Shown: positions 1,410 to 48,237 of the stretch, piece after piece
Position numbering within the stretch: position 1 is the stretch's first letter
How the letters are laid out: each line of letters starts with the position of its first letter
Origin: Macrostomum lignano
Lineage: Eukaryota
Length of the DNA: 64,000 nt
Assembly (NCBI GenBank): GCA_002269645.1
Contig: NIVC01002321.1
Coordinates: forward strand, 1-64,000
Direction of reading: 5' to 3'
Notes under the pieces: generated by a model
Told to the model about the DNA's origin: nothing
The model's database searches: none
Seen by the model: the letters and a program-made list of their open reading frames with translations, nothing else
Position numbers and translations under genes: made by a program

Positions 1410-1793
1410 GACAGATATACTGCAAAGCAAGTCCAGCACCTACTTTTAGAGCGCTCTGCGACTCCGACCTGTGCCGAGTGTCGCGTACAGCGTAAGCCAG
1501 CTTGCTGGAGTTCTCGTACGAATGACCGAACGAGTCCATCTTGTCCGAGAAGTATTTGATTGACAGCTTGGCCAAGGTGCCACTGCCTGTGCTAGCAAAC
1601 GCTTCGTAGTTGAACTTGTGGCACAGGCCCAACTCTGGATGAACCATGGTCATGAAGTGGCTCCTGTCGCATGCGCGATCGCCAAAGACGCATTTGGACA
1701 GCGAGGTGGCGAGTCCGCTGCTGAACTGCCTGGACAGCAGTGCAGTTCCGAGAGAGTCCCGCAGCGAGGCTGTGACACTCGGCACCGCGTGAT
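1410..1793 (-). CDS. DEG/ENaC exon 8: finger/palm region of ectodomain
   Basis: Acceptor catgtccag| (phase 1). Encodes SKCVFGDRACDRSHFMTMVHPELGLCHKFN, the conserved C.F.G..C...F....HP..G.C..FN. Donor C|GTATGT at 1410/1409; alternative AAA|GTAGGT at 1444/1443. Confidence 0.85.
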
Positions 1794-2109
1794 CTGGACA
1801 TGAGATTGTAGATTTAGATTGCTCAGAAGCACAATCTGGATATCCGGACTATTAAAAAAACAGTAATAAGTTGTAATAACAAAGCAGGCTATAATTATCC
1901 GCTGAGTTTTAATTTAAAAAATGCTGTTATGTAAGTAAAAGAGTAGTAAATTTTAATAATCTGGCATAGAATGCCAAAAAAGCAAACAGTGCTTATTGCA
2001 CTCCCAGACTTGCACTGAACGTCTATGAGCTACAGCCAAAGATCATATATACGCACTCATTAACCACTTATGTGGCCATAAAAGCCAATGTAAAAAACTT
2101 TGCGAAAAT

Positions 2110-3340
2110 TGATGTAACCACGCTCTGGTCGCGGGATACGGTAGGGGACATTTTTCAAAAGTACCTCCGATCTCCGTGCACCTCCTGAGCAGAGCCGTCG
2201 AGACTGGGCCAGGTCTTTGACCAGGCCTGCTGACTCCCGCTCTGCTGCATCCCCTTGCTGCCTCGGCTCCGTCTCCCGCGCCGCCACACATGCCTTTCCA
2301 GAGCCCCTACCTCTCTCTGTACCTCACCCGCTACCCTATTTCTCATGCGCTTTACCCTATCTATCTTGCACTTTTCCCGCTTCCCATCTTTTTTCTCTTT
2401 TTGCACTGTTTTCCTGCGCTGTCCCTCCTTCTTTTGGCATCTACTGACAGTACTTTGTGCGCTCACCGTCACCCCATTCCTACTGAAACTCCCAAACGGT
2501 GACGCAAGTCTTGTGACCCCTCTTTCCTCTCGATGACTCATCGATGACTCACACCACCCCCTCTTGCGCAACATTTTCTCATGCCATTGTTCTCCTCCCC
2601 AAATTTCTCATGCGGCACCCACCTCACCTCCGCTTCTATTGTTCTCGTTTTTGATTCTTTTGTTCTCCTTTCGCACCCAATTATCACATTTTCCAGGATT
2701 TTCTCTTTCTTTTGTTCTTGTTTTCGCACCCCATTAGCACCTTTTCTCCAATTTTTACTTTTCTATTGTTCTCGATTCTCCCCAATTATCCTCGATTTCT
2801 ATTTCCTTTGTTCTCGACCCCAGCCCCATTGTTCTCAATGTTTGCATGTGCAACACTTTCGCGACTTCCCGCTGCGCCAATTATCCCCCACCCCACCTCC
2901 GGATTGCGCAATTTTCCCATTTCTCATGTTGCTATGCCGTTCTCATGCTTCTCATCTTAACTCATTCTGACGTCATTCTGCCGGCAGCCAATCAGAGAGA
3001 GGGAGTCATGGAAACGATCTTGGAGCGGCGGCTGGGAAGGCTATTTAAGGAAGCGGTTTTCGGCATGAGAATCCTCAACCTCTTCGTCTCCTCGTCCTTC
3101 TTTGGACTTGCTGTCAGACACTGATCTGACCCATTCGTCTATAGGACGAACCTCTGCCGGTCCGCGGTCTGTTACCGCCAAGTTACCTCAGCTCCCCAAG
3201 TGAGCTCACCTGCCGGTCCGCGGTCTGGTACCGCACAGCATCTTCAGCATCGCCTGAACTACATCCGCGCCTCACCGCTTCAGCGCATCGCCGCTTCACA
3301 GTCTGCCTGACTGCAGCCAACAGCCGCCCACGGTCACTCC

Positions 3341-3388
<48 letters not shown>

Positions 3389-4340
3389 AGCTGCCGGTAA
3401 GTTCCTGTTACTAATTTGTGCTTTAATTGCCTTGCTTATCCGGGGTTTGCCTATTTTCCATTGCTTGATTAGAGAGCTGAGCCAATTGTGATACCGTATT
3501 ATTTGCTGTATTTATTCAATAGTGAAGTCGCCTAATTGCCTGATTATTTTGCCTAAGGGCCTAATTATTAACCATTACTAAACTCCTCATTATTCACACT
3601 TTCACCATCATTTCACTCATGGCTTGCTAAGCCTTCTCCCTGGGTGGCTAAGCATAAGGAAGTTTGGGTAAGCTAATGGCCTCTCCCCGTGCAAAGCTCG
3701 CCTGTGAGTGCGTGCTGCGGGGCCGTGTGTGCGTGCAGTAGAGGGGATTAGCGAGTCTTGGCACAGAATGGCAGTAGGAATGTTGCAACCCCATGCTGAC
3801 GCGTCCCTTCGCCCTGAGCAATCTAAACTATAGACAGTACATGTTCGCCTCACACTACTCTTAGTAATCAAAGCCGCAAGTCAGCCTCGCTCACAGCCAC
3901 AAAGGATCCCCTGCTGAGAAATCCTCCAGATTGAGCCCAGAGTTCCCGATCATGCCCCAGGCAGAGTCCCTGTACTCGGCTGCATGTGTCTCCCCTGTTA
4001 GCCTAAATCCCCTGGTAACCAATCCAGGCGGGGCTCTAGCCTCGAGAGGTCTGGTAGTGAGATCCAGGTGCGCCAGGTCACTTAGAGTGGTGGCAGCCAC
4101 TCGGTCATGCTCTGACCGAGTGACCAACTATTGCACCTTGGCTACAGGTGGGGTCCATGTGGGTCCTTGGCCCTCTGGTCACGAAAGCGCTACCAAAGCT
4201 ATCAATCATGTGGGCGGGACAGTCTGGTGCTGGAGGTCCGTCAGGTCATTGCCCGGTCATAGGCAGCCTACGGTCATTGCCCCCTCTGGTCATGCGTTCG
4301 TTTCTCAACGGAGCGGAGGGCGACAAGGGCGGTTACATCA
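2110..4340 (+). mobile_element. Probable solo LTR (Gypsy-like), 2.2 kb, antisense in a DEG/ENaC intron
   Basis: Begins TGATGTAACC and ends GGTTACATCA (TG...CA, imperfect inverted ends of about 20 bp). Flanked by 4-bp TSD AAAT (2106-2109, 4341-4344). No transposase or pol ORF. Confidence 0.65.
2968..3048 (+). promoter_or_regulatory. Pol II promoter-like cluster inside the LTR
   Basis: TGACGTCA (CRE) 2968-2975, CCAAT 2988-2992 and TATTTAA 3042-3048 in canonical order. Downstream donor GTAAGT at 3397. Confidence 0.5.
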
Positions 4341-4597
4341 AAATCAACTACTGAACTCAATTTCGTGAGTAGTCTCTACAGTACATGCATCGTTCTTAGT
4401 TTTATTAAGTAGCTTTTTATTTAATTCATGAAAAGTTCTATCACTTTCTCAAAAAATAGCGTCTAAGTCTCTAAGATACTGAACTCAACATTTTAGTATG
4501 CTTCTTGTATCCTTCTTGTGGGTGTGCTCAGGTGCCTAATGCGTGATAATGACTCCCATTAGAAACAGTCAAATATTGTTCAGAGACAAAATCTTAC

Positions 4598-4689
4598 AGC
4601 AGTTGTCGATCTCGCACTCCTCGAAGGCTAAATATCCATGTTTTTGTGTGAAACAGCCGGGCCTGCTTGAACTGAGGAATGGCTCTCGG
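4598..4689 (-). CDS. DEG/ENaC exon 7: kringle 2, part c
   Basis: Acceptor atcccttgcag| and donor |GTAAGA, phase 2-1, 92 nt. Encodes RPGCFTQKHGYLAFEECEIDNC (C-x12-C-x4-C). Confidence 0.75.
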
Positions 4690-4770
4690 CTGCAAGGGAT
4701 TCGGGAATCAGGAAAATTAAAGTCTAGTTACAGTAAAGGACCAGAAGGCCTGGTTCAAATTGCAACTCAC

Positions 4771-4906
4771 CGGAATACCTGACTGCCATTACTCAGGGTG
4801 TAGAGAGTTTCAATCACAACCATGACAGAGCGACAGAAGCTGTGCTGGCTGCTCGTCTCAAAGTCGGGCATGTCGATGTGCACGTTGAGCACTCGGTATG
4901 TTCTGA
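4771..4906 (-). CDS. DEG/ENaC exon 6: kringle 2, part b
   Basis: Acceptor ttcttgtttttcag| and donor |GTGAGT, phase 1-2, 136 nt open. Encodes SSQHSFCRS (kringle HNFCR). Not in the ORF track. Confidence 0.72.
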
Positions 4907-5449
4907 CTGAAAAACAAGAAAGGAGATTCCATTTTTTTAATTCCAAAGAGCATCAGGAATAAAAAACGCGAGGCCATCTGATTGAATTCTGAACGGAAGT
5001 TTTCTGAACGAAACCTACAAGAGCTTCCGCTTGAAGGTTTACAATATCCAATTCGAGTATATTCGCTATATTCAGCTATATTGGGAAACACGAAAAGACT
5101 TAATGGCTACATTTATTTATTCTGCCTAAAAAACAGATAAGAAAATCCTCCATAGGGATCAGAAATAACTGGCTAGGAAATTTCTAATTTGTAGACGCGA
5201 AGCGAATGTCCGATGAAGCCGTGATAAGTAGTGTTCTCAGCCCTTGTATAGCTAATGCATTGCATAGCAGAGAAGTGCGAGTACACAAACGGCCACACTG
5301 CTAAGAGAACAACTGTGCAAAAACATTATTGATCTACAGTATGTTTACAGTTTTTAAAGAGTTTTAAAATGATAACCGGTAGCATCGAATAACGTTGACG
5401 GGATCATTTCCATGAAGCCGTATTAAAGTTCGCCACGTCCAGTAGGCCT

Positions 5450-6114
5450 CTGGGACCAGTCTCAAGCACTCGTTAGGCACCTCCAGCTCTGCTGGCCGCC
5501 AAGGCTGGAATTTCAAAAGTAGCGCGTAAGGTCGGCCGCCCCCTGCTTGGACTCAACTGCAGGGACATCAGGTCGGTGACCATGGCCCTCTCGGTAATGG
5601 CTGTTTTGCCAGGCATCGTCAGTGAGATCGGCAGTGAGAAATGCCCATTCTGCCTCTCCGGTGTCGAGAATGCGGAGCACTTCATCTGGGAATGCCTTCA
5701 TCTGTTTACTCAGGACAGGCTCACCTACCTCGGCCCAAACCCGGACCTCTCCGACGTTTTCAGGCCCGAGAATCTCTGCCAGCTCGTCCGCTACCCTAAG
5801 GGCTACCGGGCAAGCGACCATCCACCTTCTGGACTCTCCGGAGGGGGACCGCGCTGCAGACACCGGCACCACCGGAACTCCCTGCGCGACACCGCAGCAC
5901 TAGCTGCCCGTGGTCGCCAGAGGTTAGCAAAGTGTGCGGCAACGCCTCCTCGCTGTTTCCAGACGCACGAAGCCCCCTGCAGCTGAGTCAAGTATTGGCA
6001 CTGGAATCTGTCTAGCGAGTGGAAAGGTGGCTTCTAGTTGTGCCGTGTTGCAGCCAGTCGGCTCCTGCATGGTGATCCAACGACCAGTTACCAAGCTGGG
6101 TCGGCAACAACAAC
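5450..6114 (+). mobile_element. Degenerate 3' end of a non-LTR retrotransposon (ORF2 C-terminal CCHC knuckle, 3' UTR, (CAA)n tail)
   Basis: IGSEKCPFCLSGVENAEHFIWEC (CxxC..EH....C), preceded by frameshifted ALSGNGCFARH. Ends in caacaacaac. Confidence 0.75.
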
Positions 6115-6308
6115 AGTTGAATCAGAGCTCTTTCCCTTTCAACGGGAAACATAATTTCTTAGAAATGTAGATTTTAGCAATTAAACTATATCAAATAGCT
6201 AGACTGATTAATAAAGCTGATGGGTACATAATGAAAACTAATCCCAACGAAAAATATACTACTGTAGCGTGAAACATTGCATTTCTTATTAGAGGCAAAA
6301 GGCTATGT

Positions 6309-6935
6309 TGCACCCTGGCGCACTTTAAGCAACATTGTCAGCCAACTGCCCGCCCATTCTACCAACTCCCCTGAGCAGGCACACAAGCGCGCATATACGT
6401 CTGCAGTCATACACACAGGCACACACTCACACGGAAGTGTACAGCGACCCTAACTTTATTTATCGTTAGGCATGTACACGGGGGGTCAAGGACACAAAGT
6501 ACATTTGGGGTCAAGCCCGGAACGCTGTAGCCTATTGGTTAGAGCGTCGGACTCACGACTGAAAGGTCGGGGGTTCGATTCTCGATCCACTCGGAACAAT
6601 TGTGTCCTTGAGCAAGACACTCTGCATTGCTTCAGTTCACCCAGCTGTAAAATGGGTGCCAGCATAGCTGGGGTAATTGAGGGTGAGTGTGGCGAACCCC
6701 CAGTCCTTGGACTGAACAGCCGTAAGCAGCCTTCAGATGTGAGATGGGGCAGGTGTAATCAGTTACTATGTACACTTTCCTGTTCCGGGTTGGTCCTCAA
6801 GTGCGTTAATTGCACGAGCAGAGCCAAGCCGAGGTTCCAATTTAGCCCCAAATTAACGTGACTGTACTTGGGGTCAAGCCCGGACCACTGCCACATCAGA
6901 GCGCCGTGCTAGACCGCCAGGCTACGGCCTCCCCC
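6309..6935 (-). mobile_element. tRNA-derived SINE family B, copy 1 (interrupted by a family A SINE)
   Basis: Minus-strand head gggaggccgtagcctggcgg with A-box. Body homologous to 7413-7683 and 34896-35229. Confidence 0.75.
6524..6767 (+). mobile_element. tRNA-derived CORE-like SINE family A
   Basis: A-box tagcctattgg and B-box ggttcgattc, then ttgtgtccttgagcaagacact...cagctgtaaaatggg resembling the CORE domain. 8-bp TSD atgtacac (6472-6479, 6768-6775). Confidence 0.85.
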
Positions 6936-7126
6936 GATAAGCAGGTCGAAATAAAAAGTGAGCCGAATATGTGCAAACTCATACTATACAATCACTAAAG
7001 TCAATTACAAAGTAAGCTTTGCAAAAACCCATGAAAAAAAGCAGTTTTTAAAAGCAACAAATTTCTTTGTCTTTTTTCTGAAGTCGTCCTTCTTGCTCAC
7101 CCACTAGCCGCATGCACTGGACTCAC

Positions 7127-7369
7127 TGCTAAACGGCAGGTCGTGCCGGAACCAAGGCGCCGATTCGTGACCCCCTGCATTGTTGGCAAGGATTTTCCAG
7201 ACTCCGGATTCCAGATTTGTCTTGACATCAGCCCAGGTTAGGCAGCGCCTTGCCGTCATGGTTCGGTTCGCCGCTCCAGTGTAATGGCTGAAGTGGTCGA
7301 TCTCTGAGTTGGCGGCTCTTGTACCAGCCAAACTGCTGCTAATACTGCAGTCGTACTTTGTTGGTATGC
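7127..7369 (-). CDS. DEG/ENaC exon 5: kringle 2, part a
   Basis: Acceptor ccttactcag| and donor |GTGAGT, phase 1-1, 243 nt. Encodes YDC...HYTGAANRTMTARRCLTW (kringle YxG..T..GR.C..W). Confidence 0.75.
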
Positions 7370-7412
7370 CTGAGTAAGGATTGGGTACATTGTAGTAAGT
7401 GTACTAAGGGTA

Positions 7413-7683
7413 CAAGCGCGCGGATACGTCTGCAGTCATACAGTGTACGCGCAGGCACACACTCACACAGGAGTGTACAGCGGTCCTAACTTTATTTATC
7501 GTTAGGCATGTACACTTCACTGTGCCTTGCGGGTTGGCCCTCAAGGGCGCTAATTCCATGAGCAGAGCCAAGCCGAGATTCCAATTAATGCAACTGCAAA
7601 ATTAAAGCCCGAAAATTAATGCAACTGCACTTAGAATCGAGCTTGGGCCGCTGGCACATGAGAGCACAGGGATACGGCGCCCC
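7413..7683 (-). mobile_element. SINE family B, copy 2 (tail missing)
   Basis: Shares ctaactttatttatcgttaggcatgtacac and gcagagccaagccgag with the other copies. Confidence 0.75.
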
Positions 7684-7778
7684 TACATCTACACTACACG
7701 ACTATCCATTCTGAAAACAAATATTTGATAAAAATTTTGGATTGGAGCAGCCCATGGCCGAAGATTCAGCATACTCAC

Positions 7779-7901
7779 CACAGTAGGGGATGTTGCAGCC
7801 AGCAGCCGCCATGAGTCCATGTGCACTGTCGTAGAAGCAGAAAGGGCCATCAAAAAATGTAACAGCTTCCGGTCGGAGCGGAATAAACACCGGATTCCAA
7901 G
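7779..7901 (-). CDS. DEG/ENaC exon 4: C-terminal half of kringle 1 (C4-C6)
   Basis: Acceptor tatttcttcag| and donor |GTGAGT, phase 1-1, 123 nt. Encodes GPFCFY-x-GCNIPYC (C-x13-C-x4-C), like kringle PWCY..C.IP.C. Confidence 0.8.
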
Positions 7902-8122
7902 CTGAAGAAATAGTGGATCGCAAGCTAGCAGTTTGACATTAGGTCAAACCCTTGAACTTTGAACAATTAACAGGTGTAGAGTTCTGCTATACTGTACGCT
8001 CGTAGTTGTCACGGCATGCATGTGCAGATAGATCAGTTTTCATTTTTTAGATTATTAGTTAATTAGTTAGTTAAACATTTCGAAAATGTTTCTAAAATTC
8101 CAAGCATATGGAAGCGACTCAC

Positions 8123-8458
8123 CCGACTCGCGAATCCGGTACACGCTGGTGAAATTGTCTCCACCACCGCAGTAGACGCCAGGTCCGTTGCCGCCACCGC
8201 AAAAAGTTGAGCACTTCTCCGGCTTAGAATTTCGCACCGGTTTGAGCAGCTGATAATCATCTTCGGCATCAGCTAGCGAGCTACACAGACAGATTTGCTG
8301 ATCGAGCGCCATGTGGGTAAAGTTTCTCCGATAGCAGCACTTTTGGCACAATTCCGGTGACAGAAATCTCGCTGGCTGATCAAAACAGTCCATCATTTGG
8401 TGGAATCGGCTCAGTGCAAATTTTTTCGAGAAGCACCCGATGTACTTTCTAGCAGAGT
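8123..8458 (-). CDS. DEG/ENaC exon 3: WSC domain
   Basis: Acceptor aacgacag| and donor |GTGAGT, phase 1-1, 336 nt open. Encodes KYIGCF...LCQKCC...QICLCS...KCSTFCGG...YCGGGDNFTSVY, the WSC cysteine pattern. Confidence 0.85.
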
Positions 8459-8640
8459 CTGTCGTTAAAATATGTTAAAGAAAGACTTCCTGATAAACGG
8501 ATAAGCGAACGAAGCATTCAAAATAAGTTCTGTATTTTCTTGTAATTTCGATTTGTAAATTAAAACAAATATCGCTTTCCAGTATAATCATTACCTCGTA
8601 AAGGTAACTAGATAGTTAACGTTTGTCAACAGCATAATGA

Positions 8641-8901
8641 GACCTAGAGAGGTTATAGCGTCGGACTCGATTGAAAGGTCGAGGCTTAGTTTCTCGACCC
8701 ACTAGGAACAATTTGTGTCCTTGAGTAAGACACAATTCTGTGTTGCTTCAGTTCACCCAGTTGTAAAATGGGTGCCAGCATTAGCTGGGGTAATTGAGGG
8801 TGTGTGTGGCGACCCCCCAGTCCTTGAACTGAACAGCCGTACGCAGCCTTCAGATGCGACGCGCAATAGCTGCGGCTGAGCTGTCGGTTGCATATCTGGC
8901 C
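8641..8901 (+). mobile_element. SINE family A copy
   Basis: Same CORE-like body as 6524-6767 and 48565-48864, with a degenerate head. Confidence 0.8.
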
Positions 8902-9233
8902 ATTTATCCCTGATTTTGCAAAATCACACGGCTTGTACATATTTTTCTTTTATATACATTAATGGTACGACCTATGATTTCATGACTCAGTTGATGTCAG
9001 TGTGAACGATTCTCTAAGGTTCTATGTATCTGCTTAAGAAATGTTCCTAGTATTACTATAAGAGTTCAGAAGTACGGGAGCCTGGTTGCTCGGAGGTCAT
9101 ATGAGAACACATGGAACCCCTTGCTCTCAGTGTCTAAAACCAACCTACATGTACTAAACAAACGTAACTGCAAAAATCTATAAGCGACATTCAACAGATC
9201 CGCAACACCATGAGTCTGCCAGCTGCAACTTAC

Positions 9234-9593
9234 ACGTAGCAACTCCGAGATCACGCAGGCTCTGCAGAGACAGTCCGGGGGGTTTCCGACATCGTCTGTC
9301 TTCATTCGACAGGTTCAAAGCCCGGATGCGTTCCGCCAGCAGTCGGGCAGACGACTGAAACCGGCCTTGGACTTGTTCAAGCCTTCGAGCCGCCTCGCTC
9401 CAGGCCAGGCATCTTGGCCGATTCAGAAATGATGCCACGAAATCCGAGGTCGATTGGTTATCAGGCTGTTGCGTGCGATCGACAGGCGCGGTCAGGAAGC
9501 TATCAGAGTACACGGCGGCTGCGTCCACGCTGCCAGAGTACTCCTCGCCGGTAGCCGTGAAGCGGCAGTTCTGACCCATAGATCTGGACGAAG
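9234..9593 (-). CDS. DEG/ENaC exon 2: N-terminal half of kringle 1 (C1-C3)
   Basis: Acceptor ttgcacag| and donor |GTAAGT, phase 1-1, 360 nt open. Encodes NCRFTATGEEYSG...RCLAW...RRCRKP, matching kringle C..G..YxG / C..W / CRNP motifs. Confidence 0.8.
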
Positions 9594-10402
9594 CTGTGCA
9601 ATTTAATTGTATTCAATTCAATGAGACAGAACCAATCAATTGGTTATCAATCAACCTTAAATCAACTGTTTTAGAAGGCAATTTTTCTACTAAGGAAATG
9701 CATGCAGAGTCACTATATGGACAACTCAATGGAGACCGGTTGTTGCTGCCAAGGAGAGCTTAACAATATCCCAAATGCTGGACTTCTGTATTCCAAAGAA
9801 GGTTAGCAAGTGTTTTGTCCGAAGTGCACTCACAAGTTCATCAAGCTATTTATTTTTTTGAAATGCGACCGACCAACGACTAGCAGGCCTATCTCCTATC
9901 TCCTTTTTCTAAGAACAAGTCTCTCTATGAGGAAACCGAAACAATAAAGCAAATCTTAACAAAATTGGTTCAGAAAACACAACTGTAGTTGGAATCAAGG
10001 ACCGCTTTAGAAGTTGCGCGTTGGTTTGGCTCTGAGTGCATTGGAATGGTGGACTGGCTGGGGTCGTCACCCTCGCCCTTTTATTTGCCTCTGGCCTCTG
10101 TTTGCTCAGCAGCGTTTTTGGCTGCCTTGCGTGAGCTAAAAAAACTGAACTCAAGCTGTCAATCTACCTATTATGTAACTTTATTATCTAGCCAGGAAAC
10201 AAAATAGGCCTGCTATTAATAATAATTATTGATTCTCGTGGGACCCTCCAGTGGCGGAAATTTAACATAATATTTAGAGTGCTGCTGTGCCACTTAATTC
10301 GTGGTGCTTTTCTCCCGGCTGAATAGGTCAACCCATGGAAGCATGCTAATTCTGTTACACTATAGCCGAAAATTTATGCACGCATTTAAAATGGTTAATC
10401 TA

Positions 10403-11106
10403 GTATAGCATTTTTCAAGCCAATTGAGCCTTGGTGGGAAAATCAAGCTATTTTAGACTTGCTTTTCAACGTCTATGGCCCAAAGGGGGGTCTGTGGAGC
10501 AACCAATTTGAGAACCTGGGCGCTTTTAATCCTTTCCATTGTTGTGCAAGCCTTAGACCAAAGAAAATAACAGATTTCATTAGACAAACATGGATATGGC
10601 AGACGAAGAATTTAGCGAGAAGAGCAGTGACAAAGTTCTGCTACAGCCCAAGATGCAGTGGATGAGCAGAATCCTGCAGGGCAAGAACCCTATCGCAAGA
10701 TAAGCAACGAAAAGTACGACCTGATTGTCGCTGCCATCGAGAGAGGTGATAGTGCTGAGCACATTTCGCGATGGCTGGACGTAAAGAGAATAGCAGTGTA
10801 TTCTATCAGGCGTCGCTATGAAATCACGGGCCTGTTTTGATTGGTTTCTCTGAAATCAAAGTGCTAATGTCAATCGTTTTTTGATATGCCATCTATTTGC
10901 AGACGTTATTTCAGTGAAGTTATTCGTGAAAGATATACGAGCACTGTGAAAAGGATTAATTGCGCGCCCAGATTCTCAAATTGGTTGCTCCGTAGACCCC
11001 CCTTTCGGGCCATAGACAATGAAAAACAAGTCTTCAATAGCTTGATTTTCCCACTAAGGATTAAATTGCTTGCTCCTAGGCTTAATTGACTTGAAAAATG
11101 CTATAC
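10403..11106 (+). mobile_element. Non-autonomous Tc1/mariner-like element with about 130-bp TIRs and an HTH remnant
   Basis: gtatagcatttttcaag...ctgggcgc is matched by its reverse complement at about 10965-11106. TA on both flanks. Internal ORF 10658..10840 (IVAAIERGDSAEHISRWLDVKRIAVYSIRRRY) is helix-turn-helix-like. Confidence 0.75.
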
Positions 11107-11729
11107 TATTTCTAGCCGCAAGTTCGACCGATCAGTATGTGAAAATGTTATTTTACGACAAGATTCTATGGGTCCAGTCTGACCTTTCAACGCACTCGTC
11201 TTGACTAAACATATACACTTGTAGCCTTCGACGGGCACAAACTTTATTAAATCAAATCCAACCAAGGTTGAATAGAGTTGGGCAAGCAGCCACGGTCGAT
11301 GGAGTTGGTACATGAGGTAACTGTACAGGGCGGTTTGTCATGATGTCGTTATATTCGTTTAATGTCGTTTCATTCCGGACATTATTTAGGTTCAATTATT
11401 TTAGTTCTTATGCTATTCTAAAATGGGTTCTACGAGCTAGTTGCATCATTTTCCTCATTGAAAACATCATTAAAACCAAGTTTAAGAACTTCACCTAGCG
11501 TTTTAAGGTGTTTCGTTTTTAACAAAGGCATTTAAACACAATTTTTGCTTGTTTTTTTCTTGTCACTAACTTCAAATTTTTAACTTGAAATAAAAACGTA
11601 TTATGTAAGATTAACATTAAGTTTTAATCTCAAAAATTTACTGGACAATAGACTGTAGCAGTAATGTAAATATAGCTTTTCAGTCTATTTCGGCTTATGC
11701 GCACTGAATTTAATCCAAGATACGTTTGC

Positions 11730-12000
11730 CAATGTCACGGAGCTTTTGTCTATGGTAGCAAGGCTGACACAGCTGTATTTAATTTGGTCCAACAAGCCTC
11801 AATTTGGCCCATAGCCTCATTTGCAACTGTGGAGGAGGCGCAAGACCAGCCCCAGAACTGTGGACCATATGCTAGGCTATCAAACGAATGCCATTAGCTT
11901 GTGGTCGAAGCACTCGACAGAGGTGAACACACAAAGGACATTGCAAGGTTTCTGAATGTAGAATAAAAGATGGTTTACAGCATCCATCAGCGCGTTGAAA
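11730..12000 (+). mobile_element. Relic of the same HTH-transposase family
   Basis: PYARLSNECH*LVVEALDRGEHTKDIARFLNV aligns with ORF 10658..10840. Nucleotide match to 56985-57195 on the opposite strand. Confidence 0.6.
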
Positions 12001-12211
12001 CTACTGCCCAGGGCCCTTCGAAAATACCTAGCTAGCTAAGTAATAGTCTTCAGGAGCCCGCGACCCAGGGACAACCTTAGTAGAAGGACACTGCACTCGA
12101 ATTTCTTAGACATGGCTGGGTGCGGTTAAGAAACGTATATTTTTTGTTCTGGAAGTGTATCTTCAGAGATTCATTTTAGCATTTACACGTCAACAAAGTC
12201 CCTTAACTAAC

Positions 12212-12725
12212 CTTCTTTCTGCATGATGAAGCGAAACTCGTGCGTGAGTCCGGTCTCAACGGCGGCCAGAGTGTCCGACAGGGCCAGGGCTGGCTGGCCA
12301 AGCCGCGGTCGCTTCCACCCTGTGCTTGGATCCGCGTTGGCAATGTCGAATACCAGAAAGTTCAACTTGCACTTGGTATCGCAGTTGAGCAGGGAGTTGA
12401 GTTCCGGTGCTGCTGAGCTGTCCGTGAGCTTGCTAATTGACAAAGCGTCGTTTGGACAGATGTACACATCCGGGAAGCGATAGGCCAGCGACGTGGTCAG
12501 GGTGGTAAGCAGCGGCAGGCTGAAGAACCTGTCGAACAGGGTGTACATGTGATAAGCAAAACCGCTGTAGGTGCCAATTAGAAAGGCCAACCAAATGACG
12601 CGACCGTAGGCGCTGCTCTGCGAACGGAACCGACCAAGGCCGTGCGCCGTAGTGTACTGGCAGAACTGCTTCAAGGCATGGATCGGTGCAGTTGGCTGAT
12701 GTGCTTGATGTGCCTTCCCCTTCAT
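12212..12725 (-). CDS. DEG/ENaC (ASIC/FaNaC-like) channel, exon 1: N-terminus, TM1, start of ectodomain
   Basis: ORF 12207..12794 contains the pre-TM1 motif FCQYTTAHG, hydrophobic TM1 (VIWLAFLIGTYSGFAYHMY) and FPDVYIC. Phase-1 donor GAAG|GTTAGT at 12212/12211. Start is ATG 12725, or upstream ATG 12794. Confidence 0.9.
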
Positions 12726-13396: not shown

Positions 13397-14880
13397 ATTC
13401 GCTTTTCCCATAAAGCATACAGCATTCGTCATAAAACAGAGGCAAAAAGTGATTCATGTAGACACAGTGCTTTAAGTAGTCTGTACTGCTTAAATAGATC
13501 CTTAATTTTAGACTGATACAGTCGGCCTACGCAGCAAAGAGATCCTTAATTTTAGACTGATACAGTCGGCCTACGCAGCAAAGAGATCCTTAATTTTAGA
13601 CTGATACAGTCGGCCTACGCAGCAAAGAGATCCTTAATTTTAGACTGATACAGTCGGCCTACGCAGCAAATAGATCCTTAATTTTAGACTGATACAGTCG
13701 GCCTACGCAGCAAAGAGATCCTTAATTTTAGACTGATACAGTCGGCCTACGCAGCAAATAGATCCTTAATTTTAGACTGATACAGTCGGCCTACGCAGCA
13801 AAGAGATCCTTAATTTTAGACTGATACAGTCGGCCTACGCAGCAAATAGATCCTTAATTTTAGACTGATACAGTCGGCCTACGCAGCAAATAGATCCTTA
13901 ATTTTAGACTGATACAGTCGGCCTACGCAGCAAATAGATCCTTAATTTTAGACTGATACAGTCGGCCTACGCAGCAAAGAGATCCTTAATTTTAGACTGA
14001 TACAGTCGGCCTACGCAGCAAAGAGATCCTTAATTTTAGACTGATACAGTCGGCCTACGCAGCAAATAGATCCTTAATTTTAGACTGATACAGTCGGCCT
14101 ACGCAGCAAAGAGATCCTTAATTTTAGACTGATACAGTCGGCCTACGCAGCAAATAGATCCTTAATTTTAGACTGATACAGTCGGCCTACGCAGCAAATA
14201 GATCCTTAATTTTAGACTGATACAGTCGGCCTACGCAGCAAAGAGATCCTTAATTTTAGACTGATACAGTCGGCCTACGCAGCAAATAGATCCTTAATTT
14301 TAGACTGATACAGTCGGCCTACGCAGCAAAGAGATCCTTAATTTTAGACTGATACAGTCGGCCTACGCAGCAAATAGATCCTTAATTTTAGACTGATACA
14401 GTCGGCCTACGCAGCAAAGAGATCCTTAATTTTAGACTGATACAGTCGGCCTACGCAGCAAATAGATCCTTAATTTTAGACTGATACAGTCGGCCTACGC
14501 AGCAAATAGATCCTTAATTTTAGACTGATACAGTCGGCCTACGCAGCAAATAGATCCTTAATTTTAGACTGATACAGTCGGCCTACGCAGCAAAGAGATC
14601 CTTAATTTTAGACTGATACAGTCGGCCTACGCAGCAAATAGATCCTTAATTTTAGACTGATACAGTCGGCCTACGCAGCAAAACAGTCGGCCTACGCAGC
14701 AAAGAGATCCTTAATTTTAGACTGATACAGTCGGCCTACGCAGCAAAGAGATCCTTAATTTTAGACTGATACAGTCGGCCTACGCAGCAAAGACTACGGG
14801 TAACTTTCCTAATACCATTCAACTCAAAAGTTACACGTGGAATAACTCGCAGCCCGTAGCCTAAAGATGCGCACTCGAAC
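13397..14880. mobile_element. Dispersed repeat hosting the 44-bp array (second copy at 26115-26333)
   Basis: Both flanks of the array match 26115-26333, where the unit occurs once. Confidence 0.7.
13493..14792. repeat. 44-bp tandem array (about 29 units)
   Basis: Unit gatccttaattttagactgatacagtcggcctacgcagcaaa(t/g)a. Units are nearly identical, with no spacers. Confidence 0.97.
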
Positions 14881-16289: not shown

Positions 16290-16805
16290 TCGTAGCTCTA
16301 GGGTCTTTAGCGCCAGGGGCTTTAGCACCCGGGTCTTTAGCACCAGGGGCTTTAGCACCAGGGGCTTTAGCACCAGGGTCTTTAGCACCAGGGTCTTTAG
16401 CTCCAGGGTCTTTAGCACCAGGGGCTTTAGCACCAGGGTCTTCAGCACCAGGGGCTTTAGCACCAGGGTCTTTAGCAGCAGGGTCTTTAGCAGCAGGGTC
16501 TTTAGCACCAGGGGCTTTAGCACCAGGGTCTTCAGCACCAGGGGCTTTAGCACCAGGGTCTTTAGCACCAGGGTCTTTAGCAGCAGGGTCTTTAGCAGCA
16601 GGGTCTTTAGCAGCAGGGTCTTTAGCACCAGGGGCTTTAGCACCCGGGTCTTTAGCACCAGGGTCTTTAGCACCAGGGGCTTTAGCACCCGGGTCTTTAG
16701 CACCAAGGGCTTTAGCACCCGGTCTTTAGCAACAGGGGCTTACACCAGGGGCTTTAACACCAGGGGCTTTAGCACCAGGGGCTTTAACACCAGGGTCCTT
16801 AGCAC
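16290..16805. repeat. 15-bp minisatellite (about 34 units)
   Basis: Unit ctttagcaccaggg(g/t). One minus frame reads (GAKDP/GAKAP)n. Confidence 0.95.
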
Positions 16806-17675
16806 GAGAGGACAATCACAGTGGTTAGGGTAAGGCTTATCTAAGAAATTTGCAACAGGGCTGGGTGTTCTATGTCTCTCCGGGCCACCTGTTGAAGCTG
16901 CCGATGTCGTCGGGGCGATGAAAGAGTGTTTGAGTGACCAGCAGTGGTGTATTGAATACACTGGCGCCTATGGAAAAACCCGAACTTCTGACAGTTTTTT
17001 GAATAATTTGAATTTGGATTGAATAATTTGTTTCACTTTGGACGCAAATTTGAATTCTTCGAAATAAAAACGAGAGCCAGCAGAATATTTGAATGCTCTG
17101 TATAGTTGTATAATATTTAGCTCTTGTGCGTCAACTCACATTTAATTGTATTCGAAAAATTCGATCACAAACTATGTGGTTTTACATAATGTCCAGAAGA
17201 AGAAAAAATAATTTGAGTAATTGTAAATAATTTTTCTAAGATAATGAAAGATTTTCATATTTTCGGTAGCTCAGTTGAAAAGAAAACAAGGTAAACAAGT
17301 GTATGAGTTTCAGTTCTCAGAGTATCGAGGTGATTCTCATGCGATTGCACAGCGGCAGTTCGTCATGGAGAACCAGCAGAAAAAAACTGAAAATCAGAGA
17401 GAGAAAAATCATATTTAAGAATAAGAAACCGAAAAAAAGTCCATTTTTGAGGAACGTACGCAAAGCGACACAAGACAGGGCAGAGGAGAGGGGTTTAAAA
17501 CTGGTTACCGACTAGTCAAAACCAGTCGCAAACCAACGCATTTTAGGCCTTTTATAATTTTTGGGATAAAATAGAATTAACCAGTGTCTCAACCATTTCG
17601 CAAGCTATCGTATTGATTTGCTCTTTGACCATCTTCAGTTCTTCGGTCAGATCCAGCAGCTCCAAGCCTCGCCTC

Positions 17676-18431
17676 TCAGGTCAGGACGAACTTCACCCAG
17701 TCGGCGCTCGTCTCGATCGCCTCCTCCACCTGAGCGTCGGTGAAGTGCAGCAGGCGGCATTTCTTTTGCTTCTTATTGAACAGCACGTGCTGGCTGTCCT
17801 TCGATCGCGTCGCCATGGCAACGCACTCGATAGCACTGTCGATGTTGGTCAGGTCAGTGAAGCAGTACTCAGAGCTGGGATTGTAGCTGGACCGCTTGAA
17901 CGGAGTTCGCCTCCACTGGCCGTTGAGTTGGGCCGCAATCGGAGCAGCTGCAGCGAACTCGCACGCAAATCCAAGTTTGTAAGAGCAAAAGAAGTCGGCG
18001 AGTTTGCTATTATTTGTGTATGTACAAACGCAGTCCTGCTTACCGCCTACGTTGTTTGGGTCATTGCTGACCCACAGAGAGGCATTCAGAGGCAGATTGT
18101 CTTTGCCGAACACCGTCTGCCAGCCCTCCCTGCTGGCGTTTCTCTAATCCGCCATGTCGGTCACTCCGAGCCAGATTTTATTGCCAGTTTGAAAACTCGG
18201 CATGCTCGGCAGCAGCTGCAGCGAGCCGTACGAGTTGATGAGCTCGCCTCCGATCGATGAGCACTGCCGATTGGCCTCGCACCAGGTGAAGCTCTGGGAT
18301 GGGTTCACGAATATGCACCTGCCGGCCTCGATATAGAAGGGAGCGGGGCACTGAGCCAGCACTGGCAGCAGTGAGCAGAGCAAACTCAAAATAATGTGGA
18401 TAAATGTTCGCACTGCGACTGACCTTTGCAT
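17676..18431 (-). pseudogene. Intronless secreted C-type lectin + PAN-like protein, copy 1, with one in-frame TAG
   Basis: Signal peptide, then CPAPF...FTWCEANRQCSSIGGEL...IWLGVTD, NDPNN..QDC..C......FACE and SAIECVAMA...VLFNKKQKKCRLL. ORFs 18144..18431 and 17676..18113 share a frame. TAG at 18144-18146 is GAG in copy 2. Confidence 0.85.
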
Positions 18432-22509: not shown

Positions 22510-22921
22510 TTACTCAAACACAATGTTAATCAAATTGTTGTTGCCGTCAATGCTAACACGCATCTTCTTGGTCGGACAGGCCTCGATATGAACTGGCCGA
22601 GGAACCGGCTCGTCAATTGATTGTGGGGTGGCATTGCAACTGGTAATCGTCATCACTTGCGTGCAGACAGTAGAACTGATAGAGCCGCTCGCATTACCGC
22701 TCGCATTAGCAGAGAAAGACGCCTCATTGGACGGCATTGTGCTTGTGCTTGGAATATGCCGGCTTAGTGCACAGTTCACTGCCTTGGAACTCCTGAACAG
22801 ACTGCGGTCCCGGCGCCTGGTTAAATACCTTTTGACCGTCTTCTCGCATTTCTGGCCGGTAATTAGCATTATGTCTTGCAGCGAATGGCCGGCCGCGTCT
22901 AGATCGCACACTCTAGTGACT
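22510..22921 (-). CDS. Crypton-type tyrosine recombinase, exon 2
   Basis: Acceptor ctcccacag|, phase 2, 91-bp intron. Joins to HCIRVTRVCDLDAAGHSLQDIMLITGQKCEKTVKRY (catalytic Y). Total 500 aa with no disablement seen. Confidence 0.82.
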
Positions 22922-23012
22922 CTGTGGGAGAATTAAAGGACAGTAATTTTATATGAACTAGTTAAAACTATTTATATAGCATATTGGAAAGCGAAATTTA
23001 CTTACGAGCTAC

Positions 23013-24103
23013 CTAATACAGTGATTAGTGTAGACCTTGCTTAGACCGGCCTTCGCACTCAGATTCTTCATAAATTCTTGAAGGAATCGATACCCTCGAG
23101 CGGTCTTCTCAGAGAAACGGTACGGTTTTCCAGGTTGTCCTTGAAGAGGCTTCGGAAAAAACGATCGAGCAGACTGCGGTAGATGACTGATGTATGTATC
23201 TATAAGCTCAGTTTCATAAATTCTGGCGTGCTTTCCGTCGACGCTTTTCTCCGGATGATCAACATCAGCTGACCGATTCTTCGAAGGTAGGGACGGCAGG
23301 GCGAAATACTTGCGACCGTCAGCATCTACACTGTGTTGCAAACAATCACGCCCCATCAAGGCACGTAAGTGTTCCTGTCCACGTTCGCCCAGCTCGTAGA
23401 GAATCCGAAATAGCGTCTCATCCTGCAATCTTTCAGCATCACGCCGGTTGAAATAGTCACGGATCTTTAGCATATCGCCTTCCTCGATTGCATCATAGGT
23501 GCGTGTCTCTTGGCCAGCTTGAATGAATTGCTTGATCTTGTAGCAGAGCATTCTGTTGCTTCCATCGAAAGCCGTGTGCTTAGCAATCAGATTGGTTGGA
23601 CGCTTGCACAAGATATTTAAATATCGTTGGATGCCTGCTCTAATGCAACCAAGTGATGCTTGTGCGTAATACTTCCCTTCTTTCGTCTCTAATTGAAAGT
23701 AGTAGAGTCTCAAATACTCATTTAGTGCTCCATCATCCAAATCCTGATAGTCGGTACGCAGTCCTTTGCTCATACAGAATTCCAAAAACTTCCTACCATT
23801 CTCTTCCATTTGTCGTCGCGTGCTTATGGGTAGTCCGTCCAACTCGAAACTGTCTAAATCAGCCAATTCAGCCGAGAGATGATCGTCTGCAAGTTGATTC
23901 TCGTATTCTTCGAGACCGTTGGACTGGCCATTATCGTCCTCTATAAACTTAATAAAAGCCGAAATAAGCTCCTGACAATCATCGTCAAGTGACGATAGTC
24001 GCGTAATAACGTCCAGTTCATCGGTAGTAGCGCCACTAATACAGTTATCAGGGAGATTCTTGTAGTTTATCAATGGCGGAACAATTTGTCTTCCGGTTGA
24101 CAT
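23013..24103 (-). CDS. Crypton-type tyrosine recombinase, exon 1
   Basis: LGERGQE (catalytic R) and SKVYTNHCIR (HxxR), in a DUF3504/ZMYM-like context. Donor AG|GTAGCT, phase 2. Confidence 0.85.
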
Positions 24104-27420: not shown

Positions 27421-28345
27421 AGATTAACAACAATTTAGGAATGCAAGTTCAAATTTCGATAGTTTATTTTTCTTTTGATTCCATCAGGGTGAAAAACTTT
27501 TCAAGCAAACTGTCTAAAATTGAAACGAAAAGTTATAATTTTTCATAGCTGGTTGAAGTTTATTGCACAGTTTAATATTAGAATACAAAGAGATTTCCCC
27601 ATTTGGAAATGGAACAGAAAAAACCACAACAAAGACGGGTAAAAAACAATTCCACAATGCTTCTTAATATTCGGACCAAAATTGAAACGATCGAACCAGC
27701 TGTTAAGTCTGTTCTCAGTCTGTTCTCATGGTGCTTTTATTGCGATTGCACAGTCGGCTCTTCGGTCAGATCCAGCAGCTCCAAGCCTCCTCGCCTCTCA
27801 AGTCAGGACGAACTTCACCCAGTCGGCGCTCGTCTCGATCGCCTCCTCCACCTGAGCGTCGGTGAAGTGCAGCAGGCGGCATTTCTTTTGTTTCTTATTG
27901 AACAGCACGTGCTGGCTGTCCTTCGATCTCATCGCCATGGCAACGCACTCGATAGCACTGTCGATGTTGGTCAGGTCAGTGAAGCAGTACTCAGAGCTGG
28001 GATTGTAGCTGGACCGCTTGAACGGAGTTCGCTTCCACTGGCCGTTGAGTTGGGCCGCAATCGGAGCAGCTGCAGCGAACTCGCACGCGAATCCGAATTT
28101 GTCAGAGCAGAGAGGTCGACGACATTAGTGGAGCTTTCAAAGGTGCCTACGCAGTCCTGTTTACCGTCTTTATTGTTTGGGTCACCGTTGATCCACAGAG
28201 AGTCATCGAGAGGCAACTGGCCTCTGCCGAACACCGTCTGCCAGCCCTCCCTGCTGGCGTTTCTCTCATCCGCCATGTCGGTCACTCCGAGCCAGATTTT
28301 ATTGCCAGTTTGAAAACTCGGCATGCTCGGCAGCAGCTGCAGCGA

Positions 28346-28821
28346 CCGCCGGCCCCAACAGGGACCGGGTGCCCCAGTCCATCGGGGGTACGGTCATGGA
28401 CACTGCCTTGTCGTGGCGACCCGGCTTAATCCTGTCGTCGGCTCCCGCCGGTTGCCGGCGGCAGGAGAACCAAAGTGTCCACCCTTCGGCTGTCGACAGG
28501 GACACAGCGGCTGCCTGCGTCCCTGCCCCCCTGCTGGCAGGCAGGCGCTCCGACTCGGCTGGGAGTGCGACCGACCAGGCGCCGAAGCCAGGGTCGGCCG
28601 GTCCAGCACTCGCCCCAGGCGAGGCTGCGTCTGGTCCCTTGGCTGACTCGTCTGGGATGACGTTGGCGTTGACTGGCTCCGGTGGGAGGATAACATGCCA
28701 TGCTCCCACGCTGGCAGCAACCACCCTTCTGGAGTCCAGGATGATGCGTGGCTTGTCCCCTCCCTGCCCGGCGTTCGGAGGCGCTTCCTGGCAGGCTAGC
28801 CCCTTACAACAACAACAACAA
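28346..28821 (+). mobile_element. 476-bp non-autonomous RTE-like retro-insertion with (CAA)n tail
   Basis: 15-bp TSD cagcagct(g/t)cagcga (28331-28345, 28822-28836). Tail (caa)5. Copy 1 of the host gene shows the empty site. Confidence 0.85.
28349..28480 (+). ncRNA. HDV-like self-cleaving ribozyme fold
   Basis: P2 GGACACU 28398-28404 pairs with AGUGUCC 28474-28480. P3 GCC/GGC around L3 UUGUCGU. P4 UCCUGUCG/CGGCAGGA. J4/2 CCAA. P1 3' strand GACCCGG has imperfect partners. Confidence 0.7.
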
Positions 28822-29530
28822 CAGCAGCTTCAGCGAGCCGTACGAGTTGATGAGCTCGCCTCCGATCGATGAGCACTGCCGATTGGCCTCGCACCAGGTG
28901 AAGCTCTGGGATGGGTTCACGAACACGCACCTGCCGGCCTCGATGTAGAAGGGAGCGGGGCACTGAGCCAGCACTGGCAGCAGTGAGCAGAGCAAAATCA
29001 AAATTGCCCGAATAAAGATATGATATGGCGGTGGGTCTTGCATTTAGAGCAGGCAATTACCCAATTACCTATTTTGGTCTTGTTTTCAGTTCAGTTACGA
29101 AAAATTTTTTAGTCAAGCCAGTTTTAATAAATTAGAGGTGTTTGGGTAACGTCCAATGCTATTTAAAGTTTTAAACACCTTTAGTTATATGGATTTGCTT
29201 GATTTTATAACGCAAGAATTCCTCATTGGCTGCTATTAGCACTGGCAATGGCGGCTCAGTCCCTCCACTGGTCACTTTCTCTCACGGGTATCATACATCT
29301 CATAGGTAGCAATGTGGCTGTACATCGATAAAATAGCCTTGCATTGCCGCATAATGCATGGGCATAACTGCATGTAAACACATAAATTATGTGTGCTAAA
29401 AGACAAAAACACAACTTTAATAGGCTATTAAAGCCAAGCTGCATACCTAGGTTCGCACAGGAATTTTAATTGAAGGGGTCGCAACCTTAAGGGGCCCAAA
29501 GCTGCATACGTAGTTGCTTGGCACCTTAAG

Positions 29531-29811: not shown

Positions 29812-30712
29812 GATTCTCAGTTTCCCAGTAGTTTTTCTGGGGGGGGGGGTGGCAGTTTTATGTTGCATTTCACATACTCGTATTGCTTTCGTATCCATTT
29901 AGCTTGAGACGAAGTCGCTTGATGAGACAAACTGGACATTAAAGCAAAAGGACTCTGGGTTTGTCTCCTCTGTGAGTTAAGGACCACTACAGTAGAATAT
30001 TATGTTACTTAAGTAGTCCTTGGTTGCGATGTTTGACAGAGTCAAACAATGGACGCAAACATCTTGTTAATTCGTGGAAAAATGCTTTCCACGAGTTCCA
30101 TGCTTCATTAAATTGATGCATTTTGGCATGCAGTGGAGGAGGCGCAAAAACTGGGGAAGCATGCAGTTGCTAGGAGGAAAGGTTTGGCATGTAGCTCGTA
30201 TTGAGTGAGTTTCCCCACCTAACGGAAGCCAGTTGATGGATAAACAAGTCTTTATGTCCATTAGGGTTGATCGTCTAGCATTAGCTATCGTTTTGGCTAT
30301 AGAATCTAGCTGGTGCAATTAGGAGCCTAATGGTGAAAAAGTACTCGTAGGTCATAGTCTGAACTGCGGAGCATTCGATAATTAACCACTGTCGATGGAA
30401 AATGGAAAACAAAAAAACTGCATTTTGCCCGCCTCGACCAGAGTAAGTTTGCGAACCTGCATGATCCCCCTTAATGCTGACTTTCTGGTACATTTCCTGT
30501 CAAAACCAACTGGTAGAGTAGAAGCTGTTGCAACAGCTCTGCTCTGAGATCTCACATGCTATACGTGTACGATGGTTAAGGCTTTAACTTGAATGTTCTA
30601 CTTACATGTTAAATGTTGCATGAAATCCACTGCAAAATACATGTATACAATTTGCCAACCCGCTATCGTTCACCCGCTTTCAAATTCTGCCCGCGGGGGA
30701 TTTCTATGAAAA

Positions 30713-33536: not shown

Positions 33537-33683
33537 AAGATACTGGCGGGAGATTGCAGTGTTCTGCATACTAGATTGCAATGTCCTGCAAAAAGATGCT
33601 AGCTCCATTTCAGTTCGTACTGATCCTGCACTGTAGCCTGCACTGCGCACTGGCCTGCCAGACGACTCTAATGGATTCGATCA

Positions 33684-36600: not shown

Positions 36601-36715
36601 TGGATCTTCCATGTGGAATCCATATCTTGATTCCACATGGATGGACGGAGACAAATGCACATATGGATTTCATATGAAAAATCCACATGGAATCCATATC
36701 ATTTTTTTCACTGGG
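33684..36715. mobile_element. Non-autonomous CMC/EnSpm-like element 2
   Basis: TIR cccagtgaaaaatgatacatggattccac / gtggaatccatatcatttttttcactggg-like, 2-bp TSD CA, and subterminal ccacatgg/ccacgtgg repeats. Confidence 0.65.
34896..35229 (-). mobile_element. SINE family B, most complete copy
   Basis: Minus-strand head gggggccgtagccaagtggtagcgc...agctcgaatcc (A and B boxes). 3' end cgcttaaagtgcgccagggtgca. Confidence 0.8.
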
Positions 36716-36779
36716 CAATTGAGCTCTGTCGCAGAACAAGCAGGCAACACCCCGATAATTAGCGACTCTCCATTCTAGC

Positions 36780-37000
36780 GCTGATGTCTGGCTCAGCTGA
36801 AAGAGCTCAACGCCTGCTAGACCGGCTGACGGCGGCGGCCGCTGTGATTGGACTGTCCGTGAACACCAAAAAGACGATGGTGCTGACCGTACCGACGGAC
36901 CTCCCAGCGGAGTCGATAAACTGCCGCTGCAAAAACTGGCAGGCGCGGCATTGCTGCCTCGCTGCAAAGAGTTCGTCTACGTACTCTAGCTAGCTTGGCG
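36780..37000 (+). mobile_element. LINE (RTE-like) reverse transcriptase fragment
   Basis: SAERAQRLLDRLTAAAAVIGLSVNTKKTMVL...KEFVY corresponds to RT domains 6-7. Confidence 0.8.
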
Positions 37001-46149: not shown

Positions 46150-46345
46150 GTAGGTTGAAGTTTTGGTTCGGTTTCTTAGAAAATTATTTTTTGAAGGCTG
46201 GTTTTACATAAATATATAGATTAGCTAGAAAAATGACAACATTGAGTTTGTTTGTTTGAATAGACACGCATGTATTTATATGGTATTTACTAAGGTATAT
46301 GCTTTACAACGATCGACTGCTACAACTCAACTGCTTAACCTAACT

Positions 46346-48185: not shown

Positions 48186-48237
48186 GTTAGTAAAATGGCT
48201 TGTATTCATAAAATATCTTTGGGGTAGCTTAGACACA

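Follow-up and report, generated by a model that had tools for sequence, protein, structure and literature searches.

Can an ion channel of the DEG/ENaC family carry a block of cysteine-rich receptor modules inside its extracellular finger domain? The question is raised by a stretch of 64,000 nucleotides (nt) from the flatworm Macrostomum lignano (contig NIVC01002321.1 of GenBank assembly GCA_002269645.1, positions 1 to 64,000, forward strand), which is referred to here as the window. On the minus strand of the window, a DEG/ENaC gene holds six additional exons, termed the cassette, between the exon encoding its first transmembrane segment (TM1) and the exon encoding its C-x-F-x-G-x-x-C motif. 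An initial annotation, made from the sequence letters, had read the cassette as a kringle-WSC-kringle unit of 430 residues spliced into the finger. The finger is the site of action of protons in ASIC, of peptides in FaNaC, and, at the GRIP domain, of proteases in ENaC. As judged from the structure of the gene, we give a slightly better than even chance to the cassette being spliced into at least some channel transcripts. The module content that we propose differs from the one annotated initially, since the WSC-like exon lies inside the first of two kringle-like modules.

A divergent DEG/ENaC gene with six in-frame exons in a phase-1 intron

Judged by profile and motif matches, the host locus is a genuine but divergent metazoan DEG/ENaC subunit gene on the minus strand, as had been proposed. 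Translated without the cassette, the host protein matches the Pfam family ASC (PF00858) at 88.8 bits, against a curated cut-off of 23.6 bits, and the match runs continuously over profile positions 1 to 287 of 455. When the cassette is included, the score is 75.8 bits and the match is broken into two stretches. Exon 1, as read from its translation, encodes QYTTAHGLGR (containing the HG motif), the hydrophobic TM1 segment VIWLAFLIGTYSGFAYHMYTLF, FPDVYIC, and the proximal finger, and it accounts for ASC profile positions 1 to 90. With CVFGDRAC and GLCHKFN in the exon after the cassette, the N-terminal and extracellular DEG/ENaC motifs are all present, and the SKCVFGDRAC...GLCHKFNYE block aligns with residues 247 to 278 of human beta-ENaC. 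The nearest PDB sequences are FaNaC1 (8on7; E = 8e-5) and ENaC subunits, among them beta-ENaC. The channel is very divergent, with E values to PDB members of only 1e-4 to 1e-2, and its ASC part gave zero matches in a word-indexed search of 5.8 billion proteins.

The channel and cassette exons are as follows.

12725-12212, minus strand: DEG/ENaC exon 1 (514 nt), with an ATG start, ending in phase 1 at the donor AAG/GTTAGT
9593-9234, minus strand: cassette exon 2 (360 nt, phase 1-1), N-terminal half of kringle-like module 1
8458-8123, minus strand: cassette exon 3 (336 nt, phase 1-1), 10-cysteine WSC-like module in a single exon
7901-7779, minus strand: cassette exon 4 (123 nt, phase 1-1), C-terminal part of module 1, FFDGPFCFYDSAHGLMAAAGCNIPYC, with Cys4 to Cys6
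7369-7127, minus strand: cassette exon 5 (243 nt, phase 1-1), N-terminal part of module 2, YDC...HYTGAANRTMTARRCLTW
4906-4771, minus strand: cassette exon 6 (136 nt, phase 1-2), middle of module 2, with Cys3 (HSFCRSV)
4689-4598, minus strand: cassette exon 7 (92 nt, phase 2-1), C-terminal part of module 2, RPGCFTQKHGYLAFEECEIDNC
1793-1444, minus strand: DEG/ENaC exon after the cassette (350 nt, phase 1-0), with CVFGDRAC and HPELGLCHKFN
398-~210, minus strand: following DEG/ENaC exon (VIVVPPGAYPW...), in which the Pfam ASC match reaches position 287

The last of these exons lies beyond position 1410, where the initial annotation had placed the limit of the feature. After it, the gene exits the left end of the window, so the second transmembrane segment (TM2) and the selectivity filter fall outside the window. 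The product encoded within the window comprises 781 residues when joined with the cassette and 351 residues without it.

Each of the six cassette exons has AG before it and GT(A/G)AG after it, and together they form one open frame of 1290 nt, or 430 codons, with the phase series 1-1-1-1-1-2-1. The exons, their coordinates, AG/GT sites, total length, stop-free chaining, and phases were reproduced exactly as first annotated. The entry and exit phases of the cassette are equal to phase 1 of the host intron, and the phases computed from exon lengths indicate that exon 6 is required to hold exons 5 and 7 in frame. Both ends of the cassette are phase-1 boundaries of the internal-module type: the acceptor at 9593 precedes Cys1 by 9 residues, which is a typical module boundary, and the exon 7 donor (GTAAGA) directly follows Cys6. 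Because the open frame of exon 2 starts only six codons before the acceptor, the phase-1 AG at 9593 is the sole possible upstream junction. In the joined protein, the cassette junction is located ~80 residues after FPDVYIC and 34 residues before the C-x-F-x-G-x-x-C motif that aligns with beta-ENaC. From this position relative to the motifs, we infer that the insertion site is in the variable finger-coding region, in agreement with the location annotated initially.

The noncoding parts of the locus contain several repeats. A relic of a Tc1/mariner-type transposon (10416-11072) is situated in the intron between exon 1 and the cassette, with 75-nt terminal inverted repeats (84% complementary) around a plus-strand open reading frame (ORF) of 60 residues that matches HTH_23 and the Sleeping-Beauty helix-turn-helix domain. 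Pieces of one interspersed repeat, 88 to 94% identical, are found at 6410-6842, 7446-7586, and 8782-8859 in three different cassette introns, which were therefore targeted by the same mobile element. A (GAGAG)n microsatellite of ~122 copies (556-1170) fills most of the intron between the exons at 1793-1444 and 398-210 and yields a spurious minus-strand ORF of 388 residues that is rich in S, L, and P. Upstream, a 44-bp satellite (13492-14793) starts ~770 bp before the channel ATG, in the presumed promoter-proximal region; its main array (13492-14682) has ~27 copies with 98% matching, and a few more copies extend to 14793.

Coding-like character of the cassette

The cassette exons look like coding sequence. 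Their long open frames alone are not decisive, because ORFs of 110 to 140 codons that look noncoding share the same introns, and other properties of the exons were therefore considered. The guanine-plus-cytosine (GC) content at third codon positions (GC3) is 0.61 in the cassette, compared to 0.67 in the ASC exons and 0.58 to 0.64 in the exons of two other genes in the window, a flavin monooxygenase (FMO)-like gene and an APP-like gene; the overall GC content of the introns is 0.46. The relative synonymous codon usage of the cassette correlates with that of the ASC, FMO, and APP exons at 0.65 to 0.70 in the claimed frame, versus 0.38 to 0.46 in the other two frames. The 22 cysteines are grouped as 6 + 10 + 6, an even number in each module, and N-x-S/T sequons occur 6 times where 2.8 are expected (p = 0.05). 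Module 2 is assembled from three exons with phases 1-1, 1-2, and 2-1, which are workable only together and which, once spliced, give an ordered kringle match.

Two kringle-like modules of unequal clarity

Consensus-guided inspection identified exactly six cysteines in each kringle-like module, in kringle order and with the usual neighboring residues. The cysteine contexts are QNC, RPRCLAW, RRCRKP, GPFCFY, and GCNIPYC in module 1 and YDC, RRCLTW, FCRSV (only partially C-R-x-P), RPGCFT, and ECEIDNC in module 2. In module 1, exon 2 carries Cys1 (QNC), Cys2 (RPRCLAW), and Cys3 (RRCRKPPG), with long insertions between them. Insertions of 40 to 66 residues separate cysteines in the kringle-like modules, which are 161 (nested exon excluded) and 157 residues long, compared to ~80 residues for a compact triple-loop kringle.

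The Pfam Kringle family (PF00051) has a gathering score of 34.3 bits. Module 2 alone, that is, the last three cassette exons, scored 22.2 bits (E = 1.8e-4) in two stretches, which is subthreshold, with exon 7 covering profile positions 49 to 79. Untrimmed module 1 gave no match to Pfam Kringle. A hand-trimmed join of exons 2 and 4 reached 26.3 bits over positions 3 to 79, still below 34.3, and this score is given little weight because the consensus guided the trimming. A local hidden Markov model (HMM) was also built from six kringles, those of human Kremen1 and plasminogen kringles 1 to 5, and run unfiltered; the Kremen1 ectodomain sequence used is 100% identical to PDB 5fww_B. The local HMM matched module 2 at 19.9 bits in two ordered pieces, HYTGAANRTMTARRCLTW in exon 5 (profile positions 9 to 30, 9.4 bits) and RREPFLSSSRPGCFTQKHGYLAFEECEIDNC in exon 7 (positions 48 to 79). 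For module 1 (exons 2 and 4), the score was only 4.4 bits, over the ordered pieces TATGEEYSGSV and RCLAWSEA in exon 2 (positions 3 to 16 and 22 to 34) and GPFCFYDSAHGLMAAAGCNIPYC in exon 4 (positions 59 to 79). Module 2 is probably kringle-derived, as suggested by its cysteine framework and its spliced profile match, and module 1, which is very degenerate, is only plausibly so.

A WSC-like exon nested in module 1

Exon 3 reproduces the eight-cysteine spacing of WSC domains (GC...C-x3-C...C-x-C...C-x3-C...CGG) and has one extra cysteine pair. A regular expression derived from Kremen1 matches exon 3 and 0/200,000 composition-preserving shuffles, and its cysteine-only version matches 70/200,000; the match is a lead, not proof, because the tolerances were set after seeing the sequence. 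A single-sequence AF2 model of exon 3 is of low confidence (pLDDT of 45). A Foldseek search of this model against the PDB returned nothing at E < 1, the top match being a PAN/apple lectin at a nonsignificant E of 1.7. By cysteine spacing only, exon 3 is WSC-like, and nothing more can be said.

The position of exon 3 is between Cys3 (RRCRKPPG) and Cys4 (GPFCFY) of module 1, and the architecture is consequently not the linear kringle-WSC-kringle order given by the initial annotation. Its domain labels are confirmed only in part. The kringle labels hold for the six-cysteine framework and for the E value of module 2, with both modules below the curated cut-off and module 1 very degenerate; the WSC label holds for the spacing of eight cysteines, with no support from Pfam, the PDB, or fold comparison. 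In the profile check that had been suggested for the joined protein, ASC was significant, Kringle was subthreshold, and WSC was not matched. The modules may fold as kringle and WSC domains.

Inclusion in the channel transcript and alternative explanations

No convincing exon combining a methionine and signal peptide with a phase-1 donor was found in the introns flanking the cassette, which agrees with the initial annotation; the intron at 12211-9594 contains two weak signal-peptide exon candidates in poor context. Same-strand ORFs of the flanking introns contain no Pfam domain, CUB included. Lacking both, the flanking introns leave the ASC exons as the only available coding partners. A module set with 22 cysteines needs the secretory pathway, and the extracellular finger, by way of TM1 in exon 1, would supply access. 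Up to 20 kb upstream, the only real signal peptide belongs to a C-type-lectin gene with its own stop. This gene (18431-17676) was considered as the 5′ part of a cassette gene and rejected: its last ORF gains a further cysteine-containing stretch and stops at 17676.

Under the explanation that we favor, exon shuffling would have placed the 1290-nt, six-exon block into a phase-1 intron of the finger-coding region. The product of the block would be a disulfide-rich extracellular array in which a degenerate kringle-like module, with the 10-cysteine WSC-like module in its Cys3-Cys4 loop, is followed by a clearer kringle-like module bearing long loop insertions. The frame would be kept just as well in an isoform without the cassette. 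In the trimer, every subunit would carry an appendage of ~430 residues on the peripheral top of the extracellular domain. The appendage may bind an extracellular partner (protein or glycan) or matrix, with the effect either of modulating the gating machinery of the finger and its surroundings or of tethering the channel and fixing its location. A stronger version is possible, although we hold it to be doubtful: the three finger domains would each display a kringle-like/WSC-like receptor array, with binding of extracellular ligand or matrix mechanically coupled to gating, so that the protein would be a ligand- or tether-gated sodium channel in which alternative splicing could switch between plain and decorated forms. 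Gating by a glycan, a protease, or a tether is speculation.

Several results weigh against inclusion of the cassette or against the proposed nature of its modules. Direct splicing from 12212 to 1793 preserves the frame and leaves the ASC match unbroken. The whole cassette has Kringle as its only Pfam match, at a subthreshold 18.6 bits, and phmmer searches of all PDB sequences with the cassette or module 2 found no kringle or WSC domain. Alignment to kringles with hhalign gave P = 0.0024 and a probability of 12% for module 2; for module 1, it gave P = 0.034 and a probability of 1.5%, placing RPRCLAW...RRCRKPPG onto C..W...NYCRNPDG. The exon 3 translation (8456-8124, 111 residues) matches no Pfam family at E ≤ 10, including WSC (PF01822), and its Smith-Waterman score of 32 against the Kremen1 WSC domain is no better than that of shuffles (p = 0.26). 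The word-indexed search of 5.8 billion proteins yielded no homologue of the cassette, no relatives were found among JGI metagenome contigs, and an exhaustive HMMER search of 1.84 billion representatives with exon 3 alone found no real homologue. The sole HMMER match to exon 3, the database protein P0001 (E = 1.6e-41), was rejected as an artifact; it is a 3017-residue translated tandem satellite with 50 weak repeats, and it calls for caution about repeat-driven false positives in that protein library. An FMO exon used as a control query matched Mytilus and vertebrate proteins at ≤57% identity in the same protein database, which shows that metazoan proteins are present and that the source lineage is not represented there. 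Within the window, tblastn detected no second copy of the joined protein.

Unlikely, in our assessment, is an arrangement in which splicing does not connect the cassette to the channel exons that follow it. It could be an independent gene nested on the same strand, starting from an in-frame ATG at 9579 (MGQNCRF...) or from an undetected upstream exon. It could also belong to a truncated isoform in which exon 1 and the cassette are followed by read-through of the donor at 4598 and polyadenylation near 4400. The product of that isoform would not be a channel but a kringle-like protein with a type II membrane anchor. The feature concerned bears on these rival explanations only.

4400-4597, minus strand: possible alternative 3′ end, by read-through of the 4598 donor

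Such arrangements would fit the pyrimidine-poor acceptor at 9593, the ATG located 14 nt inside exon 2, and the complete, normal ASC match of the channel without the cassette. They would also fit the read-through sequence, which adds the 9 residues CKILSLNNI and a stop, with ATTAAA at 4425 and AATAAA at 4406, ~145 to 165 nt beyond. Hexamers resembling AATAAA are, however, common in AT-rich intron sequence, and the ATG at 9579 lacks a purine at -3. Moreover, a nested gene would produce a 22-cysteine protein without a signal peptide, for which no credible exon was found, and both ends of the cassette have module-type phase-1 boundaries, not those of a start or terminal exon. Still less probable, and in our view rather improbable, is that the six exons are a relic, silent or decaying, of a module block that had been shuffled or duplicated, or else fortuitous open frames, with the ordinary channel as the only product. 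The distance of the modules from every known kringle and WSC domain, below all curated thresholds and down to 4.4 bits for module 1, would be expected of a relic, as would the absence of cassette homologues from the protein and metagenome searches, the noncoding ORFs of similar length in the same introns, and the abundance of transposon debris in them. Against a relic stand 430 codons in six pieces without a stop or frameshift, splice sites that are all canonical, an even number of cysteines in each module, the enrichment of sequons, and GC3 and codon usage that are coding-like in the claimed frame only.

Comparison with known systems

In full-text literature searches, no paper connected kringle or WSC domains with the DEG/ENaC architecture; the initial annotation, likewise, had known of no characterized channel built in this way, and the literature searched contains no kringle-bearing DEG/ENaC. 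Such a channel thus appears to be unreported, and if the cassette is spliced as proposed, it would add a variant to a channel family that is already known rather than constitute a new kind of system.

Among well-known proteins, to our knowledge, only Kremen1/2 (Kringle-WSC-CUB-TM) has both a kringle and a WSC domain, and exon 3 shows the same spacing of eight cysteines as the WSC domain of Kremen1. The analogy to Kremen drawn initially does not extend to the domain order, however: in the cassette, the WSC-like module is within kringle 1, a second kringle follows, and CUB is missing. Kremen is furthermore a single-pass receptor with its own signal peptide, whereas the host here is an ion channel, and no significant sequence similarity between the cassette and Kremen was detected by phmmer or Smith-Waterman comparison. 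The kringles of plasminogen, HGF, and the coagulation proteases resemble the cassette modules in that phase-1 introns bound the module just a few residues before Cys1 and after Cys6, and the six cysteines with C-x2-W, C-R-x-P, P-x-C-[FY], and C-x4-C contexts occur in the canonical order of classical kringles. The cassette modules differ in the NPDGD lysine-binding loop, which is replaced in kringle 2 and interrupted by a whole domain in kringle 1.

On the channel side, the host shares with FaNaC, ASIC, and ENaC the HG motif, TM1, the post-TM1 FPxxxxC, and the beta-ball cysteine motifs, whereas no solved member is known to have accessory modules in its finger. Additional cysteine-rich extracellular modules are known from the EGAS proteins of Caenorhabditis elegans, DEG/ENaC subunits with EGF plus ASC domains (PMC10424705), which are a precedent for shuffled modules in the family; the EGAS modules are EGF domains, in contrast to the kringle-like and WSC-like modules of the cassette. 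Because EGAS channels gave no currents in oocytes (PMC10424705), there is no functional model to borrow from them. The GRIP domain of ENaC alpha and gamma sits in the finger and regulates gating (Noreng et al. 2018, PMC6197857), doing so from the periphery of the extracellular domain. Like the cassette as proposed here, it is a lineage-specific finger insertion between TM1/beta1 and the C-x-F-x-G-x-x-C strand. It is, however, a small beta-rich autoinhibitory insert that is released by proteases, whereas the present block comprises ~430 residues of disulfide-rich modules from separate phase 1-1 exons, and the cassette revealed neither an inhibitory tract nor a convincing furin site.

Other features of the window

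The other genes recognized in the window are metazoan: FMO-like, APP-like, and KLRAQ coiled-coil genes and C-type lectins.

45520-49462, plus strand: flavin monooxygenase, FMO-like (E = 2e-80)
52474-53292, plus strand: APP-like gene, with APP_N and CuBD domains
60607-61089, plus strand: KLRAQ coiled-coil gene

The best match of the FMO exon is from Mytilus edulis, at 57% identity, with gastropod and ENA proteins also at the top, followed by vertebrates. As the best identity is only 57%, the source lineage is poorly sampled in these resources. A secreted C-type-lectin-like gene with the signal peptide MQRSVAVRTFIHIILSLLCSLLPVLAQC and a weak Lectin_C match occurs in two minus-strand copies (17640-18392 and 27759-29004), ~10 kb apart; the copies are 91 to 97% identical, and the second has an insertion of ~470 bp. 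An intact ORF of 364 residues is located at 23009-24103 on the minus strand, with an ORF of 133 residues just downstream on the same strand (22510-22911). The 364-residue ORF is unmatched in Pfam, the gene-position index lists no exact record for it, and it may be a domesticated or mobile-element gene; it is one of two ORFs in the window for which look-up found no exact-product record. A 14-kb AT-rich block (30000-44000) has a GC content of 25 to 37%, versus 44 to 55% elsewhere, and few long ORFs. A 15-bp minisatellite of ~34 copies (16300-16805) generates long spurious ORFs in several frames on both strands. Rfam searches gave no matches in the window.

Implications

Should the cassette prove to be a nested gene or a relic, the locus would be an ordinary one, serving mainly as a warning that same-strand, phase-compatible intronic exons can yield chimeric gene models. 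If the cassette is spliced into the channel, it would offer a clean, modern case of an ion-channel gene that received modules by phase 1-1 exon shuffling, one module being nested in another. Channels with and without the cassette would then offer an experimental handle on how force or binding is transmitted from the finger to the gate, and receptor modules in the finger would represent a new route to ligand or matrix sensitivity for the DEG/ENaC family.

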